IMG/VR virus record: IMGVR_UViG_3300041411_000080
Location: 62,001-126,000 of that record
Direction: 5' to 3' (one strand)
DNA length: 64,000 nucleotides
The notes under the pieces: model-generated
Databases searched by the model: none
What the model was told of the DNA's origin: nothing
Seen by the model: the letters and a program-made list of their open reading frames with translations, nothing else
In this document: positions 31,173 to 62,080 of the stretch, one piece after another
Layout: every line of letters begins with the position of its first letter
Position numbering within the stretch: position 1 is the stretch's first letter
Made by a program: the position numbers and the translations under genes

Positions 31173-34100
31173 ATGCGCTTAAAAATCATACAGTTTCTTA
31201 GAGACTACGGTCTCCGTCAGATTGGGGAGCTTCAGTCTCCTCGTCTGCACGCGATTAAGAAATTCGACTTCCCGATGGAAACCATCTATCACTTCTGGGA
31301 TGACAACACTGCTGTAATCGGACCGAGTCAAGTTGATCCCATTATTGCTAAGCTGAAAGGTAAGGTGTTCATTGAACACTTTACTCAACTGGAAACTCTG
31401 GATGGTAGTCCTAAGCGCACGGGGGTGTTGCCAATCACCCTCCTGAACGACTTCCGTAAGCAACACCGTTTCTTTAAACCGCTTCGTCGGGATGAGTCTG
31501 TACGTCTGAACCAACAGAACGTTGCGTTGTTTAACTACAACATGCTCAACCCACTGTATCGCTACATCGCCAGCTATAAAGCTACCTACTACCGTTGGTG
31601 TAACAATGCTGCAACGATGTGGACTGGTGTGGCGAATGCGGTTGAACGTTTCCCTCAGTGGAACCACTTCATCGAGCTGCATGTACCTGAACGGATTCCT
31701 ACTATCGCTCAGTTCAAACAACTCGAGACTTCACAGAACCAACACCTACTGGAATTGTTCAATACCGGTAGTTTGCTGAATCTGTTTGATCTGTATCGTT
31801 ACTTAGGTTTGGAACGTAAGACTAGTTACATCTCTAAGATCCCTAAGGCAGCGCTGGCACAGATTAACTTCTTTGTCCGTGTCCAAGGTAGCTTCTTTGT
31901 TATCAACCTTGGTAAGCTCGATGAGTGGCGTACACAGACCGAGGAAGAAGCGGAAGCTGATGCTATCGAAGCAGCTGCTCAGAAGGTAGCTCTTGAGAAC
32001 AACGATAAAGAAGCTCTGTTTGCAATGGGCTTTGAATCGTACATCGATGACTTCGGTATGGAAGCTTATTTCAAACCTGAAGTGTTGCAGCGTCGTTTCA
32101 TTAGTTTGATGACGACTCTGGTTGAATACGCACATGGCGGTGGCACACTCATTGAGAATGACGCTAACGTACAAGGTAACAACCTGCTGCAAGCGTTCAA
32201 AGAGATCACTGAAGAACAACCGGTTGCTCCAGTTGATCCTGATGATGAGGAAGAGTTGGATGAAGAGAAGCCTAAGGTTGTAGAGGAAGAAGTCGTTGAG
32301 GTAGATGCTACTGAAGTGGGTGAACCTCTCAGTAAGGTCTATAAACAGTTTGACCTCGATATCCTGCAAGTTACCTTTGAACCTCCTCCCGAGTTGGATC
32401 TTGAACGGACTACACTGCATATCGAAAACGATGAGATGTCTGAGGCTGCGGTTAAGACACTTAAAGTAGAAGAACGTAAACCGGGTACACCTGCACGTCA
32501 GGAAGAGTTCACTACTGGCGATGAGATGTTGGATGGTGTTGCTAAGCGAGCTTATCGTCTGGCTAAGACCAACATGATTTCTGAACGTAGTTTCGAACAA
32601 GCCGTTGACCAAGCTATGTCTTACGAGACAATGCCTGATCCGTTCGGTTCTGGGTTGACCGTTAAAGAAGCCATGCAGTATTCGGCTGAAGACTTCACTG
32701 TTCCAGTAGACGCGTTCCCGGACAAAGCTACGATCATGGACAAGGCAATGCTGAAGTCGGTTCACAAACCGATGATGCGTAAGTACGTCAAGACACTGCT
32801 ACCGAAAGACATCCTCAACGCAATCATGTTTGTACAGCGTCAAGGTGTATCGGTAACCGATATCAAGATTCGTGAAAACGAAGACGTGATGAACCATACT
32901 CAAACGTTCACCGTTACTGTTAAACCAGTACGGGCTCCAGCGAGTAACTTGGAATTCACTATCCCGGTTATCGACAAAGACGGTCGCTTCTTGTCTAACG
33001 GTGTTACTTACCGTCAGCGTATTCAACGTGCTGATATTCCAATCCGTAAAGTTAACCCAATGAAAGTTGCGTTGACCAGCTATACGAACAAGACATTCGT
33101 ATTGCGTTCGGAACGGGCTGATAACAACTACGATAAGTGGTTGACCCGTCAGTTGGATGTTAAGGCTCGTGATGAGTCTAACAACATTATCTCTAACCCT
33201 AAGTTTGCTGAGATTGATCTGAGTGAGTTCCAAGGGCTGCCGCGTGTGTACACTGCTCTGGCTACTAAGTTCAGTGCGTTCGACAACGGCGATATTCACT
33301 TCTACTTCAACTACCCTAAACGGGAAGAACACTTCCAGACTAAATACGGTATCACAGCTTCTAATGTGGAACGTGACGGGATGGTGTTGGTGGGTGCTTA
33401 TAACAACACCCCAGTAGTTGTGGATCAGCAAGGCGTGTTCTATCTCCAGGAGTCTATGACTGATCTGGAACCAATGGGGACTATCGTTGACCTCGCTGGA
33501 TTGAACCTGACCAAAGCTCCACTGGAATCGGTAGACGTTAAGATCGGTGGTAAAGACATTCCTCTGGGTCTGGTACTGGGTTATCAGTTTGGTTTCAATA
33601 ACCTGCTTGACAAACTCGGTGTTGAGTACACTGCTTATCCTCGTGGTACTAAAGGTGTAGTGATTCAACCAGATGAATGGGTATTGGCATTTAACGATGA
33701 AGTGTTGGTATTCCCACGCTCTGATTATAAGGCCATGTTGGTATTGGGTGGGATGCGTCGTTATCACAAGTCGCTACGTAACTACTCCCGCTATGACTTC
33801 AACCGTAAGGACGTTTACTTCCGTATCCTTGCTGAGCAAGACATGGGCGCTCGATTCTTGAAAGAGATCGAATTCCTGTTCGAAGCTTGGTTAGACCCTA
33901 TCACTAAGGGTCTGTTGGAGGAGATGGGTGAGCCAACTGACTTTGAAGGGTTGCTGTACCGCTCTGTAGAGCTGCTGATGAACGATTGGTCTCCTAATGA
34001 GGTAGACGGTGCTTACATGCGTTATCGTGGCTACGAACGTATTGCAGGCCAAGTCTTCAGTAGTCTGTCCAAGGCTGTGAAACGCTTTAACAACCGTGAA

Positions 34101-35618
34101 GGTTCCGCTGATCAGAAAGTGATTCTTGATCGTCATGAAGTATGGCGCGAGTTGAACGATCCGACAGTTGCCACCATCGAAGACTCGAACCCAATTGCTA
34201 ACCTGCGTGAGCAAGAAGCAATGACCTATCGTGGGTCGGGTGGTCGAGCTGCTGTATCGATGGTTGCTCGTACCCGTGTGTATGGTGATAACGATCGGGG
34301 GATTATCTCTGAATCGACAGTTGACTCTGGTGACGTAGGTATTATTGCTTACATGACTCCTGATGCTAACTTCACTTCCATGCGTGGTTTGACTCGCACG
34401 TTTGATGAGTCTGTTGATGCTAAGTCTAAGTTGTTCTCTACCTCTGCACTCTTGGGTGTAGGTATGGCACACGATGACATGAAGCGTATCGGCTTTGCGT
34501 CGATTCAACAGCAACAAGGTTTGTATGCAGATGGTTACGACCTCTCTCCAGTTCGTACTGGTTATGAGCAAGTGATCGCACAACGTACATCGAGTATCTT
34601 TGCGACCTCAGCTGATCAAGACGGTGAAGTTATCTCCGTTGACAAACATGCTGTACTTGTGAAGTATGCCGATGGTGAAATTGAATCTGCTCCACTGGGC
34701 ACGATTCATGGTTCTGCTGCTGGTGTGGTTTATCCACATGACTTGGTGACCGATCTTAAGAAAGGTGACAAAGTAAAACGCGGTGACACAATCTCATACA
34801 ACCGTAAGTATTTCAAGAAGGATCGCTACAACCCTAATCAAGCATCTTGGATGCCTGGGGTTATTGGCGTGGTTGTATTTAGTGACAACCTCGATACCCT
34901 CGAGGACGGATCTGTTGTTTCGGAATCCATGGCTGTTAAGTTGAACACACAGACCGCTGACGTGAAGAACGTTATCGTTCGGTTCGACCAACATGTCCGG
35001 GATCTGGTTAAAGTGGGTGACCACCTCGACCTGAATTCAATTCTATGTATTATTGAAGATCCTGAAACTGCGGGTAACACGCTGTTTGATGAAGCTTCTA
35101 TTGAGACACTCAAACGTCTCTCGGCTGCCACACCTACTGCTAAGGTAGTTGGTACGGTATCTCGAATCGAATGTTTCTATCACGGTGACCTAGATGACAT
35201 GTCTGACAACCTGCGTTCAATCGCAGAACGTTCAGATGAAGAACGTGCTGAAGCTGCACGTCAACGAGGGCGCAATGCTCACTCCGGTGAAGTAGATTCC
35301 TCCTTCCGTATTAAAGGTCAAGTGCTGGAACCAGATAGCATGGTTATTCGTATTTACATCGACCATGATATTCCATTCGGTACGGGTGACAAAGCTGTAC
35401 TGTGTAACCAGATGAAGACTGTTATCTCTCGTGTGATGACTGGTACTAACACTCTGGAAGATGGCACGCCAATCGATATCATCTTCGGCAATACGTCTGT
35501 AGAAGAACGGATGGTAATGTCTCCGAAACTAATCGCAACCACTAGCATGCTCTTGAAGCAACTCTCCAAACACATTGCTGGTGTATACCGAGGAACTAAA
35601 CATGCAAAAGCAAAGTAA
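31173..35618 (+). CDS. Virion RNA polymerase beta N-terminal subunit, phiKZ gp178-like
   Basis: 1481 aa; DSGDVG, QQQ, RTGYE, EDG, GDK and KTVISR beta-like motifs. Confidence 0.9.
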   Translation: MRLKIIQFLRDYGLRQIGELQSPRLHAIKKFDFPMETIYHFWDDNTAVIGPSQVDPIIAKLKGKVFIEHFTQLETLDGSPKRTGVLPITLLNDFRKQHRFFKPLRRDESVRLNQQNVALFNYNMLNPLYRYIASYKATYYRWCNNAATMWTGVANAVERFPQWNHFIELHVPERIPTIAQFKQLETSQNQHLLELFNTGSLLNLFDLYRYLGLERKTSYISKIPKAALAQINFFVRVQGSFFVINLGKLDEWRTQTEEEAEADAIEAAAQKVALENNDKEALFAMGFESYIDDFGMEAYFKPEVLQRRFISLMTTLVEYAHGGGTLIENDANVQGNNLLQAFKEITEEQPVAPVDPDDEEELDEEKPKVVEEEVVEVDATEVGEPLSKVYKQFDLDILQVTFEPPPELDLERTTLHIENDEMSEAAVKTLKVEERKPGTPARQEEFTTGDEMLDGVAKRAYRLAKTNMISERSFEQAVDQAMSYETMPDPFGSGLTVKEAMQYSAEDFTVPVDAFPDKATIMDKAMLKSVHKPMMRKYVKTLLPKDILNAIMFVQRQGVSVTDIKIRENEDVMNHTQTFTVTVKPVRAPASNLEFTIPVIDKDGRFLSNGVTYRQRIQRADIPIRKVNPMKVALTSYTNKTFVLRSERADNNYDKWLTRQLDVKARDESNNIISNPKFAEIDLSEFQGLPRVYTALATKFSAFDNGDIHFYFNYPKREEHFQTKYGITASNVERDGMVLVGAYNNTPVVVDQQGVFYLQESMTDLEPMGTIVDLAGLNLTKAPLESVDVKIGGKDIPLGLVLGYQFGFNNLLDKLGVEYTAYPRGTKGVVIQPDEWVLAFNDEVLVFPRSDYKAMLVLGGMRRYHKSLRNYSRYDFNRKDVYFRILAEQDMGARFLKEIEFLFEAWLDPITKGLLEEMGEPTDFEGLLYRSVELLMNDWSPNEVDGAYMRYRGYERIAGQVFSSLSKAVKRFNNREGSADQKVILDRHEVWRELNDPTVATIEDSNPIANLREQEAMTYRGSGGRAAVSMVARTRVYGDNDRGIISESTVDSGDVGIIAYMTPDANFTSMRGLTRTFDESVDAKSKLFSTSALLGVGMAHDDMKRIGFASIQQQQGLYADGYDLSPVRTGYEQVIAQRTSSIFATSADQDGEVISVDKHAVLVKYADGEIESAPLGTIHGSAAGVVYPHDLVTDLKKGDKVKRGDTISYNRKYFKKDRYNPNQASWMPGVIGVVVFSDNLDTLEDGSVVSESMAVKLNTQTADVKNVIVRFDQHVRDLVKVGDHLDLNSILCIIEDPETAGNTLFDEASIETLKRLSAATPTAKVVGTVSRIECFYHGDLDDMSDNLRSIAERSDEERAEAARQRGRNAHSGEVDSSFRIKGQVLEPDSMVIRIYIDHDIPFGTGDKAVLCNQMKTVISRVMTGTNTLEDGTPIDIIFGNTSVEERMVMSPKLIATTSMLLKQLSKHIAGVYRGTKHAKAK

Positions 35619-35811: not shown

Positions 35812-37803
35812 ATGTACCAATCCGAAACTATGGACGCTGTCCGTGACGCAGCCCAGACGTTGACTCGGGAAGGTAAAGTACTGACCATGGGGAACCCTGA
35901 GTTCCCTTTGGCTGTATTCGCCGACACCTACAAAGTTGACGCAGAGCCGACCAACACTGCGCTCCCTGATGAAGAGATCGTAGCTGTTGAAGAACACTTC
36001 GATGAGATCAACCAAGACACCACTCCGGCTGAAGATGATTCCCGTGAAGGTATTGTTGCTAACTTGGGCCAAGCTGTAGCCAAGGTTCAGTTCAACACTA
36101 CCAACGTGATTATCCCTGCTATTAAAGCAATGCATCAAGCTTACGCTAGTATGCAAGCTGCTTCTTGCCAACCTGAGTACTCGGTTAAGGCTTGGCGTTA
36201 TCTGGCTCCTCACAACAGCGCTACGCTGGTTAACCACATCAACACTCGGTACACTACCGTTCGTCCGAAAGACTCTTATAAGTCGTTCGCTCTGGAAGGC
36301 CAGTCTGCTGAAGCCATTATCGAAATGATGGCGGTCAACAACCCACACCTCGAACAAGAGGAAGTAACTGAGTGGGCTCTGGAAGTTGGTAGTGCTCGTG
36401 TTGAAGCTGTGTGGAACTCGCTGTTTACCACTGGCCATGTAATGCCGGGTGGTCTGCCTTACCTTTCAGCTCAATCTGCACCGTTTAACGTTGACGACAT
36501 TCTGGTTGCTTATCTGATTTGCGGCCACTACATCGACAACCCAGTTGTGGTTCCTAACATCTCCGTTGATCTGGAAGAGTGGGAACACACCATGAAACTG
36601 TTGCACGAAATGTTCGGCTTCTATCTGATGCGCGCTTACGTGCGTCGTGCTGACATGCGTGAACAGGGTGTGATGATCCTGAAGAACGAGGCTACCAACC
36701 CAATCGCTACCCGTAAAGCAGTTGTTACTGTTAACGGTGACGTGTTCGATCCATGGGTTGTAGGTGGTGGTGACATTCAAGCTATTCTGGGCGCTGCTGT
36801 TGAGAACACTGGCGTCACTGACGTTAAGTATCTGGACGCCGCTGCACACAAGTTCATTGAACGCTGGCATGAAGTTTACCCACTGATTCAACAAGCGGCT
36901 ATCGACTATTCTGATCGTCAGCGGATGAACAACGTTATTACTACCTTCCGTGAAATCGGTCGTAGTGAACTGTTGAAAGACCGTTACACTCCAGAAACTG
37001 AAACTGCTCTGATTGATGCACTCCGTTACGTACGTCGTGACGATTACGAGAATCCATACAAGGTCTTCTCGAATCTGATCTGCCGTGTTTACTTCCCTGA
37101 ATCGACTTACCTCGAATATCTGGATGCTATCGATCAACATGGTCAAACCTTTACCAAGGCTTCTGTTCGTGAACTGGCTACCCAAGCGATGATCTCGCTG
37201 GTTGCTATCTTCCAAGCGAAGCAGATCAAGGTTGAAGGGTTTATCCCTGAGATTGATCCAGAAGGTTCGGCTGGTGGTCCTATTGATGACTCCGGTCTCT
37301 TGGCGATTACTGATGATGAAGCTCCTGAAGAAACCGCTGATGGCATTGAAGGTGAAATCGGTGACACTGGCGAAGTGGGTGATACCGGCGTGGTTGATGA
37401 TCTCACTGGCGATGATGCTGGCATGGACGATCTTGCTGGCGGCACTGACGGTGGTCTGGACGATGCAGCTGATAGCTTGGGTGGTGATGACACTGCTCTC
37501 GATACCGATCTCGGTGGGACTGATACTGAAGCGGCTGTAGGTGAAGCTACTGATGTAGAAGAAGACTTCTCTGCTGAACCAGAGGAAGAAGATCCATACG
37601 CTGAACTGGAAACCGGTGAAGCTGATGACGTGGAAGAAGAGTCGGAAGAAGTTGAATCTGAGGAAACTACAGAAGAGACCGAAGAAGAATCTGAGTCCGC
37701 TGAGGTAGAAGAAGAATCCGAAGAGACTACTGAGGAAACTGACGTCGAAGAGACTGAAGAATCCGAGGAAGAAACTGAAGAAGACGACACCCCTTTAGCG
37801 TAA
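35812..37803 (+). CDS. Virion head protein, phiKZ gp177-like, with long acidic C-terminal tail
   Basis: GGAG RBS; synteny between vRNAP beta and protease; E/D-rich last ~170 aa. Confidence 0.75.
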   Translation: MYQSETMDAVRDAAQTLTREGKVLTMGNPEFPLAVFADTYKVDAEPTNTALPDEEIVAVEEHFDEINQDTTPAEDDSREGIVANLGQAVAKVQFNTTNVIIPAIKAMHQAYASMQAASCQPEYSVKAWRYLAPHNSATLVNHINTRYTTVRPKDSYKSFALEGQSAEAIIEMMAVNNPHLEQEEVTEWALEVGSARVEAVWNSLFTTGHVMPGGLPYLSAQSAPFNVDDILVAYLICGHYIDNPVVVPNISVDLEEWEHTMKLLHEMFGFYLMRAYVRRADMREQGVMILKNEATNPIATRKAVVTVNGDVFDPWVVGGGDIQAILGAAVENTGVTDVKYLDAAAHKFIERWHEVYPLIQQAAIDYSDRQRMNNVITTFREIGRSELLKDRYTPETETALIDALRYVRRDDYENPYKVFSNLICRVYFPESTYLEYLDAIDQHGQTFTKASVRELATQAMISLVAIFQAKQIKVEGFIPEIDPEGSAGGPIDDSGLLAITDDEAPEETADGIEGEIGDTGEVGDTGVVDDLTGDDAGMDDLAGGTDGGLDDAADSLGGDDTALDTDLGGTDTEAAVGEATDVEEDFSAEPEEEDPYAELETGEADDVEEESEEVESEETTEETEEESESAEVEEESEETTEETDVEETEESEEETEEDDTPLA

Positions 37804-37826
37804 GCCAGCCTTCAAAAGAAGCTTGG
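37791..37826 (+). promoter_or_regulatory. Candidate -1 programmed ribosomal frameshift signal
   Basis: In-frame slippery heptamer C-CCT-TTA (37791-37797), 7-nt spacer, hairpin CCAG(C)CTTC-AAAA-GAAGCT(T)GG. Confidence 0.65.
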
Positions 37827-38903
37827 AGTCCTGAGGAAATTAAGCGCCGTCTCGCTAGGCTAGATGCCCGGCGAAGCGGTCGCCCTTATCCCGCTTGGAC
37901 CGAAAGCCAGGGCGCTGGCAAAGAATACACTGAAGGTCCTGAGAGTAAGTTCACGCACCAAGGTTCCGTCTACAGTGTAGATGAACTGCTGAAGCTTACG
38001 AAGGGTTTACCAACGATTGATCTTCCAATCAAGAAGTTGCTGTGGATGCTTGACGGGGTTACCCAATTTGACGATGAACGCATCAGTAAGGTAGACCTGA
38101 GCTATCCAGTGATCGTTCAACAGCTTTCTCGTGGCTTAGGTCGATACGTAACCTTAGATGGTTTCCATCGTGTGGTACGTGCTGCTAGCGAAGGTCACAC
38201 GACTATTAAAGCGATCGTAGTAGACGATGCATTAATCGCCAAGCTTACACACCAGACACTCAGTACTGAAGGGTTCATTACTATCGATGAAGCGCGTGAG
38301 CGTGCACAAAGAGAATGTGATGCTGAAGGTATTGATCCTACTCTAAGTAATGCTGAACGTTGCACTCGTTTGATTGACATTCAACAGGGTTCTCCTTTGA
38401 TGCAAGAAGAACGTGAACGTAAGGCAGCTTACGCCGAGAGTCCTAACTGGAATCGTTTTAAAGCACATTCCATGCGAGTGATTAAAGAACTACCGCCTTC
38501 GATCGCAGAACGTCAAGCAGCTGATAAGTTCCATCGGGATCTTAAAGCTAAACTAGGTCAAACCAATGGAGTTCCAGCTATGGAAAAGTTTAACTCTAAG
38601 AATCTCTTCTCTATGTCGATAAGTAACGAGGCTGTAGCTCGTGATCCATTATGGCAACAACTCTTAGATGCTGATTGCTATTCTACATCGATTGCAGTAG
38701 CTGTACGGGAACATCCTGTTGAAGGTAAGGTTCTTGCTGATCTGTATACGAAGTTGAACGACCTTAGTAAAGGTGATGGCAAACGTGAATCAGCTTACGA
38801 TGCTTACTGTAATACTTGGTACGGCAAAGATGAAGACGATAAACTGAAGCTCATCAAAGACACGACCAAAGCTTTGAAAGCTCTTGAGAAAACATTTAAA
38901 TAA
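37797..38903 (+). CDS. ParB/Srx-like domain protein, probably translated as the -1 frameshift extension of the gp177-like protein
   Basis: Frame open from 37779 with no ATG/GTG/TTG until 38037; VDLSYPVIV...LDGFHRVVRA ParB-N-like motif. Confidence 0.6.
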   Translation, partial: SVSQPSKEAWSPEEIKRRLARLDARRSGRPYPAWTESQGAGKEYTEGPESKFTHQGSVYSVDELLKLTKGLPTIDLPIKKLLWMLDGVTQFDDERISKVDLSYPVIVQQLSRGLGRYVTLDGFHRVVRAASEGHTTIKAIVVDDALIAKLTHQTLSTEGFITIDEARERAQRECDAEGIDPTLSNAERCTRLIDIQQGSPLMQEERERKAAYAESPNWNRFKAHSMRVIKELPPSIAERQAADKFHRDLKAKLGQTNGVPAMEKFNSKNLFSMSISNEAVARDPLWQQLLDADCYSTSIAVAVREHPVEGKVLADLYTKLNDLSKGDGKRESAYDAYCNTWYGKDEDDKLKLIKDTTKALKALEKTFK

Positions 38904-38912
38904 AGGTGACCC

Positions 38913-39632
38913 ATGAACACACCAAATCTGATTCGTGATGCTGACTTTGTACTTAGTCGGCTTTCAGAAGAGTCTGATGGAAGTGTCGTTACTACTGTTC
39001 CATGCACGGTACAGATCCCAGAAAGTTTTGCAGCTAAGAACCTTGCTGTTATCGGCAGTGAGGTTTTTATCTTTGGTTTCTTCCCGATCATCATGGGTGA
39101 CCGATATGCTGTAAACAAAGCTATCGCAATGATGCGGATCTGTCCTAGCTCTACGCAGAAGATCGTAGTTAACGAGACACCATACATCGAGTTCCAGTTT
39201 GAAGCTGGTGACACACTAATCTACACAACTGCTCTGGTTGTGACGGATACACTTAGTTACTACATGTACGACGAGTTCATTGCTAAAGGGAATATCCCTT
39301 GGTACATGGATTACTTTGACATGGCAAATATGTTCGACACAGCAAAAGAGCATGCCGGGGTTGACCTCGGTGGTCGTTCGATTATCGAGTTGATTATTTC
39401 AACTATCGCTCGAGATCCGAATGATATGACTCGGCTGTATCGGCACATCCTTGCACGCCCGGAAGACCTCAGGCTTAAACCCCCTGTTACGGTTCCCTTC
39501 CGTTCTGTTATTTGGAACACTTCCGATACAACGTCTAAACTAAACGGCGCTTACTACGATCACGGTATCAACTCAGCTTTGGTTAACCAATCTGAGTCTG
39601 TTGAAATGCTCGAGGAACTGCTCCGAACTTAA
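38913..39632 (+). CDS. Virion RNA polymerase beta' C-terminal subunit, phiKZ gp176-like
   Basis: Directly upstream of protease; C-terminal NTS...SKL-x-GAY segment; synteny. Confidence 0.7.
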   Translation: MNTPNLIRDADFVLSRLSEESDGSVVTTVPCTVQIPESFAAKNLAVIGSEVFIFGFFPIIMGDRYAVNKAIAMMRICPSSTQKIVVNETPYIEFQFEAGDTLIYTTALVVTDTLSYYMYDEFIAKGNIPWYMDYFDMANMFDTAKEHAGVDLGGRSIIELIISTIARDPNDMTRLYRHILARPEDLRLKPPVTVPFRSVIWNTSDTTSKLNGAYYDHGINSALVNQSESVEMLEELLRT

Positions 39633-61672: not shown

Positions 61673-62080
61673 ATGAATCTATTTACTAGATTCCGAGAAT
61701 ACGTACGTGGTCGAGTAGTCGCGATCTGGAATTGGTTGTGGCTACAAAGCGACGTAAGTTTTCGAAGAATGTGTGTAATGGCTTCATTGCATGCTCAGTT
61801 GGCTAAATGCGAGACTGGTGACTGCGGTGCAATAGCACGTCTTAATCAGCATATGAGTTTGGTGAATGACTCCAACGCTATGAAACTTCCAACGTTGTTT
61901 GCAGGGGTGATCTGGAAAAACCTCCCGACCATCGACAAGTTGGATACAGACAGCGACAAGTTAATTCATCGTATTAAACGACTTACACCATGCTGGTTAA
62001 ACTATGCGTCTGATGACCGGTTCGAGTCGGACATTAAGGACCTGCTGGGCTTCTGTGAAGAAGCTCACAAAGCGAAGTGA
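61673..62080 (+). CDS. Hypothetical protein
   Basis: Co-transcribed after RNase H. Confidence 0.65.
   Translation: MNLFTRFREYVRGRVVAIWNWLWLQSDVSFRRMCVMASLHAQLAKCETGDCGAIARLNQHMSLVNDSNAMKLPTLFAGVIWKNLPTIDKLDTDSDKLIHRIKRLTPCWLNYASDDRFESDIKDLLGFCEEAHKAK

Follow-up and report, generated by a model that had tools for sequence, protein, structure and literature searches.

The window analysed here, 64,000 nucleotides at positions 62,001 to 126,000 of the IMG/VR record IMGVR_UViG_3300041411_000080, is part of a 320-kb viral contig related to nucleus-forming jumbo phages, among them Pseudomonas phage 201phi2-1. On its plus strand, at 35812–37803, lies a gene for a gp177/gp271-like head protein (phrog_3841, E = 1e-128), which ends in GAC ACC CCT TTA GCG TAA, with the TAA at 37801–37803. 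These last codons contain a slippery heptamer, C CCT TTA (37791–37797, plus strand), in the X XXY YYZ register and followed by one sense codon and the stop. Judged from comparative sequence evidence, a programmed −1 frameshift at C CCU UUA is very likely real and would append to the head protein an extension that includes a ParB/Srx-fold domain. The type of recoding is familiar; its location is unusual and of biological interest. A preliminary description, made from the letters of the window alone, had proposed such a frameshift; the proposal is supported by the conservation of the heptamer, its co-occurrence with the extension, purifying selection in the −1 frame, and a domain that any canonical start would truncate.

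A slippery heptamer at the end of a head-protein gene

The −1 frame is shut upstream by a TGA at 37776–37778 (plus strand), which limits the overlap of the two frames to 8 codons (37779–37803), and it is within these codons that the heptamer lies. From 37779 the −1 frame is open to a stop at 38901–38903, giving a predicted slip product of 662 + 368 = 1030 amino acids. The heptamer and its register ahead of GCG TAA, the extent of the open frame and the length of the fusion had all been set out in the preliminary description, and each agrees with the sequence. Both strands of the 64 kb together hold 71 stop-to-stop open reading frames (ORFs) that are 150 codons or longer; in a scan of these for an in-frame heptamer in the last 10 codons together with a −1 run of 50 codons or more, the gp177-like ORF was the only one to combine the two. 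In Escherichia coli, C_CC.U_UU.A and C_CC.U_UU.G belong to the heptamers that need no stimulator to shift at above 0.1% and that genes contain less often than expected (PMC4066793). A second in-frame heptamer, C CCT TTG, is found at 35904–35910, across codons 31–33 (F-P-L) of the same gene; it was not flagged in-frame in the 13 other gp177-like ORFs scanned and is probably due to chance.

Ends of gp177-like genes were gathered from isolates, IMG/VR, JGI metagenomes and one ENA contig. A word-indexed homologue search returned one protein only, and its contig (L034) supplied another junction. The pattern C CCT TT(A/G)-NNN-TAA stands at the same place in nine distinct sequences, namely the window, L009, L034, L028, L008, 201phi2-1, Viktualia, Phabio and PhiPA3 (hereafter the C CCT TTR set). 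In all nine a −1 stop lies 2–4 codons 5′ of the heptamer, and the −1 peptide P-F-x-(L/V)-(S/N)-Q-x-S-x-E-A-W...R-R-L-x-R-L-x-x-R-R is conserved after it. A sister clade of five Psa21-like sequences has G GGA AAG-NNN-TAA at the identical offset, with a −1 ORF of 90–93 codons. The unit of heptamer, one sense codon and TAA is identical in both clades, the gp177-like stop is TAA in all 14 genomes, and all of them share the layout of a downstream −1 ORF whose overlap with the head-protein gene contains the heptamer.

Conservation of the slippery site in related genomes had been named as a check in the preliminary description, and it was found wherever the extension occurs. Where a −1 extension of 87 codons or more is present, an in-frame heptamer of one of the two types sits exactly three codons before the stop, in 14 genomes out of 14 (nine C CCT TTR, five G GGA AAG), against none in the last 15 codons of the nine relatives that lack a −1 extension (phiKZ, PA1C, RVTF4, D6, Noxifer, L020, L025, L026/27 and L030). 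Other in-frame heptamers in the relatives' gp177-like ORFs number 0–2 each and none is conserved. Over the alignment, the majority fraction is 0.95 for the heptamer versus 0.70 for the acidic tail upstream of it.

By sequence comparison, then, 14 related phage genomes, 201phi2-1 and PhiPA3 among them, share the arrangement, and none has it annotated. Public records annotate truncated downstream ORFs, and in PhiPA3 none at all. The PhiPA3 −1 ORF lies behind gp208 (L004:4276–4605; NC_028999.1 ~188233–188562), runs for 109 codons from the slip and is unannotated in RefSeq; the 313-nucleotide 'intergenic' gap after gp208 is coding.

In the extension-free relatives the gp176-like gene comes directly after the gp177-like gene, in most of the nine within ~10–30 nucleotides and with a Shine–Dalgarno (SD) sequence and ATG of its own. 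Both phiKZ (L005:4085–4135) and PA1C (L006:4215–4245) have a strong terminator-like hairpin, CTCCGGTA...TACCGGAG, just past the gp177 stop, which is absent from the window, and no terminator-like site was found between the gp177-like ORF and the −1 ORF of the window.

Coding content of the −1 frame

The −1 frame begins with a linker (37797–37874, plus strand; SVSQPSKEAWSPEEIKRRLARLDARR) that has no start codon and carries an S-x-E motif, SKE, at 37812–37820. Across six phages, the 23 codons that separate the 0-frame stop from the downstream domain gave a ratio of non-synonymous to synonymous substitution rates (dN/dS) of 0.19 in the −1 frame, versus 1.77 and 2.2 in the two alternative frames. 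In the linker, pairwise differences fall 80/42/159 by codon position, and the alignment contains multi-nucleotide swaps of Arg and Leu codons. For the −1 ORF of the Psa21 clade the ratio is 0.30, versus 0.72 and 1.6 in the other frames. These substitution patterns show that, although it has no start, this stretch is read as protein in the −1 frame, where it is under purifying selection.

The first ATG, GTG or TTG of the −1 frame is the TTG at 38037, which is codon 87 of the open frame and 82 codons past the slip; together with the ATG at 38046 it makes up the only nearby canonical starts (38037–38048, plus strand). No SD-like 4-mer precedes either codon, compared with an SD-like motif in 29 of the 37 long ATG ORFs of the window (background 15.5%). 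The first canonical start is not at a homologous position in the window, L009 and L034, where it falls 82, 61 and 72 codons past the slip, respectively, and in all genomes there is none from the upstream −1 stop to 15–82 codons past the slip. The preliminary description had read the 86 startless codons as encoding plausible protein and had seen no clear SD sequence for the TTG; both statements stand, the former also because the domain described below begins upstream of the first start.

This ParB/Srx-fold domain, with a D-G-x-H-R signature, occupies 37920–38273 (plus strand). The match to phrog_17560 (E = 1e-24) covers residues 48–152 of the −1 translation, so the domain begins at about 37920, 39 codons upstream of TTG 38037. 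An exhaustive HMMER search recovered 461 homologues, mostly stand-alone proteins of 105–130 amino acids that align from their residue 2–13. An AlphaFold 2 (AF2) model of the domain reached a predicted local distance difference test score (pLDDT) of 89 and a predicted TM-score (pTM) of 0.80, and places two strands, a helix and a further strand upstream of TTG 38037, all of which a start there would delete. The top Foldseek hits are all of the ParB/Srx fold (Noc, Srx, ParB, PadC, SbnI and KorB; probability 1.0, E 1e-4 to 1e-3), and a profile search against the PDB matched SbnI at 6e-6; a single-sequence PDB search returned noise only, so that it took the profile and the fold search to resolve the domain. 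Among 62 sequences of the family, D83, H86 and R87 of the signature are invariant and G84 is kept in at least 90%.

A ParB-like module had been named in the preliminary description, and at the level of the fold this holds (AF2, Foldseek and the SbnI profile match); a canonical ParB it is not. Pfam gave no match at E 0.1 or better for the whole extension, the sole NCBIfam match was sub-threshold, TIGR00180 scoring 14.9 bits against a cutoff of 58, and ParB_N touched only one of the 62 family members. Neither a helix-turn-helix (HTH) nor a dimerisation domain is evident in the extension, for whose C-terminal half the ESM Atlas offered nothing above threshold, HTH_ParB (0.78) being one of its leads. 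With these family thresholds missed and neither domain in evidence, we rejected a canonical partition protein of the ParB/Spo0J/Noc/KorB kind, and the name ParB is unwarranted. The domain shares the fold and the D-G-x-H-R signature of the ParB/Srx superfamily, and differs from it in being a minimal unit of ~115 amino acids with an extra N-terminal β-hairpin and helix.

Two helical modules follow. The first (38283–38561, plus strand) is homologous, by tblastn and alignment, to 201phi2-1 gp270 and its counterparts in Phabio, Viktualia and PhiPA3, and ends in a conserved KLGQ. The second (38562–38903, plus strand, including the stop at 38901–38903) is homologous to the trans-frame extension of Psa21-like phages over its whole length and to a separate gene of Viktualia, CDS0481. 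The match to the Psa21 −1 peptide (BLASTP, E = 9e-13) starts 6 residues past the Psa21 slip site, so that in Psa21, too, the module begins ahead of every start codon. An AF2 model of both modules (the C-terminal 210 amino acids) is all-helical, with low confidence (pLDDT 64.5). PhiPA3 gp207 is not homologous to the C-terminal module of the window.

As far as alignment can tell, the extension is modular among the relatives. In 201phi2-1, Phabio and L008 it is limited to the linker and the gp270-like module. To these, L028 and L034 join the ParB/Srx domain, and the window joins both that domain and the C-terminal module; in Psa21-like phages the C-terminal module alone is attached. In L009, the closest relative (91% identity over the gp177-like protein), a 409-codon extension ends in a GNAT acetyltransferase-like domain (L009:6950–7257) that hits three GNAT Pfam families just below threshold (E 3e-4 to 2e-3). 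At the KLGQ boundary, the ORFs of Viktualia (L002:7270–7300) and PhiPA3 (L004:4590–4610) end and the next gene starts with an ATGA overlap; in the window (38550–38600) reading continues uninterrupted into the C-terminal module.

Proposed mechanism and alternatives

The carrier belongs to the phiKZ gp177/201phi2-1 gp271 family both by full-length homology and by synteny: its product has 70% identity to 201phi2-1 gp271 and 42% to PHIKZ177 by tblastn, and a long acidic C-terminal tail. The prohead protease cuts the head proteins 201phi2-1 gp271 (AVE-61) and phiKZ gp177 (SVE-60) (PMC5694885), and phiKZ gp177, which interacts with the inner body, enters the host by injection (PMC10449902). The N-terminal protease site is present in the window protein as A58-V59-E60, with E60 invariant in the alignment of relatives.

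We propose that most ribosomes end at the TAA and give a 663-amino-acid head protein, while a minority would slip back one base with tRNA-Pro in the P site and tRNA-Leu in the A site, and read the −1 frame to 38900. The product would be a fusion of ~1030 amino acids with the junction ...DDTPL/SVSQPSKE, its 368 added residues comprising the charged linker with the S-x-E motif, the ParB/Srx-fold domain and the two helical modules. Because no strong stimulator is evident, the efficiency of the slip is expected to be low, a few percent or less. Since gp177/gp271 resides inside the head, is cut by the protease and is injected, the gp177-like part would bring the extension into the prohead. There the prohead protease would cut after SKE (37812–37820) and free the cargo within the capsid, and the freed cargo may be ejected along with the DNA. 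We regard this cargo-loading account as plausible, at somewhat below an even chance.

The release step draws on the protease motif, S/A/G-x-E (PMC10449902, PMC5694885). The first S-x-E motif after the junction is SKE, SNE, SSE or STE in all nine members of the C CCT TTR set, which suggests a candidate release site for the prohead protease. The preliminary description had counted many S/A-x-E sites in the extension; they are present, but the motif is loose and only the first of them is conserved across the relatives. A virion association of the ParB/Srx domain family finds weak support in PA5oct, a jumbo phage outside Chimalliviridae, where the domain forms the C-terminal part of the 249-amino-acid protein EST35_0140 (L035:1090–1839), annotated as 'structural protein, ESI-MS/MS'.

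A number of observations weigh against this account of slip and cargo. C CCU UUR ranks as merely a moderate heptamer in E. coli, and no convincing stimulatory RNA structure was found at the slip site. The hairpin cited in the preliminary description does exist, 7 nucleotides 3′ of the heptamer (37805–37826, plus strand), and as a weak, imperfect stem that folds (about −6 to −9 kcal/mol by itself) it is a possible stimulator; that role, however, gains nothing from its 53-nucleotide context, which gave z = −0.2 versus shuffles, or from the relatives, most of which have the hairpin with no compensatory changes or covariation. Its conservation is confounded, because the same bases encode SQPSxEAW. 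A free downstream protein could also be made in six of the nine C CCT TTR genomes, which have a TTG or an ATG (M-K/Q/R-K-A-G) 20–35 codons past the slip, the ATG at 32–35; in the window, L009 and L034 both codons have been lost. As regards the cargo, S/A/G-x-E is a loose motif, the gp177 extension of the Psa21 clade has no S-x-E near the junction, and no trans-frame protein has been observed so far. In the GenBank record of 201phi2-1, mass spectrometry (MS) notes accompany gp271, gp269 and gp268 and none accompanies gp270, the downstream module, which would mean that the extension is rare in virions, degraded or not packaged. The missing note is compatible with a low copy number, or with a transient assembly role of the kind played by lambda gpGT.

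Two other candidate stimulators found no support. A distal GC-rich hairpin lies in the Arg-rich linker at 37848–37878 (alignment columns 58–88), with one pair (columns 69/78) altered on both sides in four sequences; at ~50 nucleotides from the slip site it is too far away for a classical stimulator. A GAGG 7–10 nucleotides 5′ of the heptamer occurs in six of nine relatives and not in the window; as an upstream SD-like stimulator it is inconsistent among relatives, and chance would produce it in E/D-rich coding sequence.

Were initiation to occur independently at TTG 38037 or ATG 38046, a stand-alone protein of 285–288 amino acids would result and the 86 codons upstream would be an untranslated spacer; no canonical start comes earlier in the frame, L009, L034 and L028 share the W-M codon pair at 38043–38048, and gene callers pick internal starts of that kind (P0001). 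Against this, the supposed spacer has the low −1-frame dN/dS of 0.19, a widely conserved domain, modelled with confidence, would lose ~39 residues, and the conservation of the heptamer would go unexplained. Given also the missing SD sequence and a first start that moves among close relatives, we rejected either codon as the true N-terminus and consider this explanation very improbable. Non-canonical initiation within the linker, for example at ATT 37839, seems just as improbable. It would leave the ParB/Srx domain whole in a free protein, and a GAGG stands just 5′ of that codon, but at a spacing of only 2 nucleotides; the codon itself is CTA, CTT, ATA or TTA in relatives, and the conserved SQPSxEAWxPEE and the heptamer, both upstream of it, would have no explanation. 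Least probable of all is an artefact or decay, whether a sequencing or assembly indel, a dying start-less gene or transcriptional slippage. The window does come from a metagenome-derived viral contig, and C4T3 is a short homopolymer pair; yet the same frame arrangement recurs in the independently sequenced isolates 201phi2-1, PhiPA3, Phabio, Viktualia and Psa21 and in several metagenomes, the −1 stretch is under purifying selection, and tracts of 4 C and 3 T fall far short of those known to make RNA polymerase slip.

A different alternative accepts the frameshift and disputes the fate of its product, which would be a transient factor in the manner of lambda gpGT, acting in prohead or inner-body assembly before being cut at S-x-E and lost. 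The lambda G/GT pair provides the precedent, 201phi2-1 gp270 lacks the virion MS flag that its neighbours have, and the S-x-E motif at the junction is conserved. The variable enzyme-like or DNA-binding-like domains (ParB/Srx, and the GNAT-like domain of L009) resemble cargo more than a chaperone, and the PA5oct protein carries its structural tag, though neither point is decisive. We judge a transient factor unlikely, while giving it appreciable weight.

The programmed frameshift, as distinct from the fate of its product, has consequences for annotation. Gene callers systematically truncate −1 ORFs of this type; the slip site would add an unannotated protein of ~1030 amino acids to the proteome, and small "hypothetical" genes of 201phi2-1, Phabio, Viktualia, Psa21 and their relatives would become head-protein tails. 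Nucleus-forming jumbo phages (phiKZ, 201phi2-1 and PhiPA3, for example) are leading models of phage cell biology, and their injected proteins decide the first minutes of infection. Cargo loading, if true, would account for the arrival of variable enzymes inside the capsid in small, fixed copy numbers, and would give laboratory strains a natural means of carrying foreign proteins in jumbo-phage heads.

A second locus, related systems and genomic setting

A parallel arrangement was found outside the window. In Psa21, D6 and RVTF4, a stand-alone ParB/Srx ORF stands directly behind an internal-head-protein paralogue (phrog_8282), in its −1 frame, and the junctions read GAG GGA AAG TAA, GCC CCA AAG TAA and GCA AAG TAA. 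This second candidate −1 recoding site lies at L036:1490–1555 (Psa21), L037:1238–1303 (D6), L038:1172–1237 (RVTF4) and ~2495–2560 of L041–L046. Six further IMG/VR contigs have A AAG followed by a stop at this position, and in one of these the heptamer A AAA AAG is complete. Three genomes in all have a full heptamer at the second locus (G GGA AAG, C CCA AAG and A AAA AAG). The conserved N-terminus of the domain, E-A-Y-S/T-E-G-P-D-S-T-F-T-H, is startless and lies upstream of the annotated ATG, and at the A AAG-plus-stop junctions K-V-x-x-S-x-E follows the slip. In a divergent relative (L047) the ParB/Srx ORF has an SD sequence and ATG of its own, and the junction is absent. Comparing the two loci, a −1 recoding signal appears to link the ParB/Srx domain to a protein of the head interior at two genomic sites of unrelated context, with S-x-E following at both.

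These observations lead us to put forward, tentatively and again at rather less than an even chance, a more general reading for Pseudomonas chimalliviruses, in which recoding serves to load cargo onto ejected head proteins (gp177-like proteins and inner-body paralogues), with release at S-x-E and co-injection. Interchangeable domains (ParB/Srx-like, GNAT-like and helical) would be tethered sub-stoichiometrically by low-frequency −1 slips. If so, DNA-binding or enzymatic activities would be in the cell ahead of any phage gene expression.

Literature searches turned up no relevant account of frameshifting among chimalliviruses or phiKZ-like phages, and the closest systems are found elsewhere. 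In T7 (10A/10B) and the Listeria phages A118, A500 and PSA, a frameshift near the 3′ end of a structural gene yields a minor, C-terminally extended isoform in a fixed ratio. The present site likewise would be a 3′-terminal frameshift of a phage structural gene; unlike those cases, the extended protein comes from a nucleus-forming jumbo phage and is not part of the shell but an injected protein of the head interior, the extension is multi-domain and modular with 90–410 amino acids, a putative protease site follows the junction, and there is no sequence homology. The tail-assembly-chaperone frameshift of dsDNA phages, of which lambda gpG/gpGT is an example, uses an X XXY YYZ −1 slip without a strong RNA stimulator and is conserved by position. 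Here, too, a −1 slip heptamer is conserved by position and not by sequence, and the Psa21 clade uses the same G GGA AAG; the gene is however a head gene and not a tail gene, the overlap is ~4–8 codons and no homology is seen. Whereas GT is kept out of virions, the fusion described here is proposed to enter the head.

A third parallel is offered by T4, where a capsid-targeting sequence on IPI-III and Alt directs cargo into the prohead, to be released by the gp21 protease. Both systems would combine a targeting moiety with separation by a prohead protease. They differ in that targeting here would be achieved by recoding onto a whole head protein and not by a short N-terminal peptide, in that the protease is of the phiKZ gp175/S80 family with S/A/G-x-E cuts (as proposed for the fusion), and in the absence of homology. 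The second locus resembles the 'shifty stop' sites of dnaX and insertion-sequence (IS) elements, A AAA AAG or A_AAG (PMC4066793), in having A AAG or X XXA AAG directly before the stop and a downstream ORF in the −1 frame; what differs is that it joins an inner-body paralogue to a stand-alone ParB/Srx domain.

Local gene order in the window is that of phiKZ and 201phi2-1: the virion RNA polymerase beta subunit (31173–35618), a small gp177.1-like ORF, the gp177-like gene, the extension, the gp176-like gene and the prohead protease. The gp176-like virion protein (38913–39632, plus strand; phrog_2926, E = 1e-89) has its own SD sequence, AAGGTGA, and ATG, and marks the end of the module.

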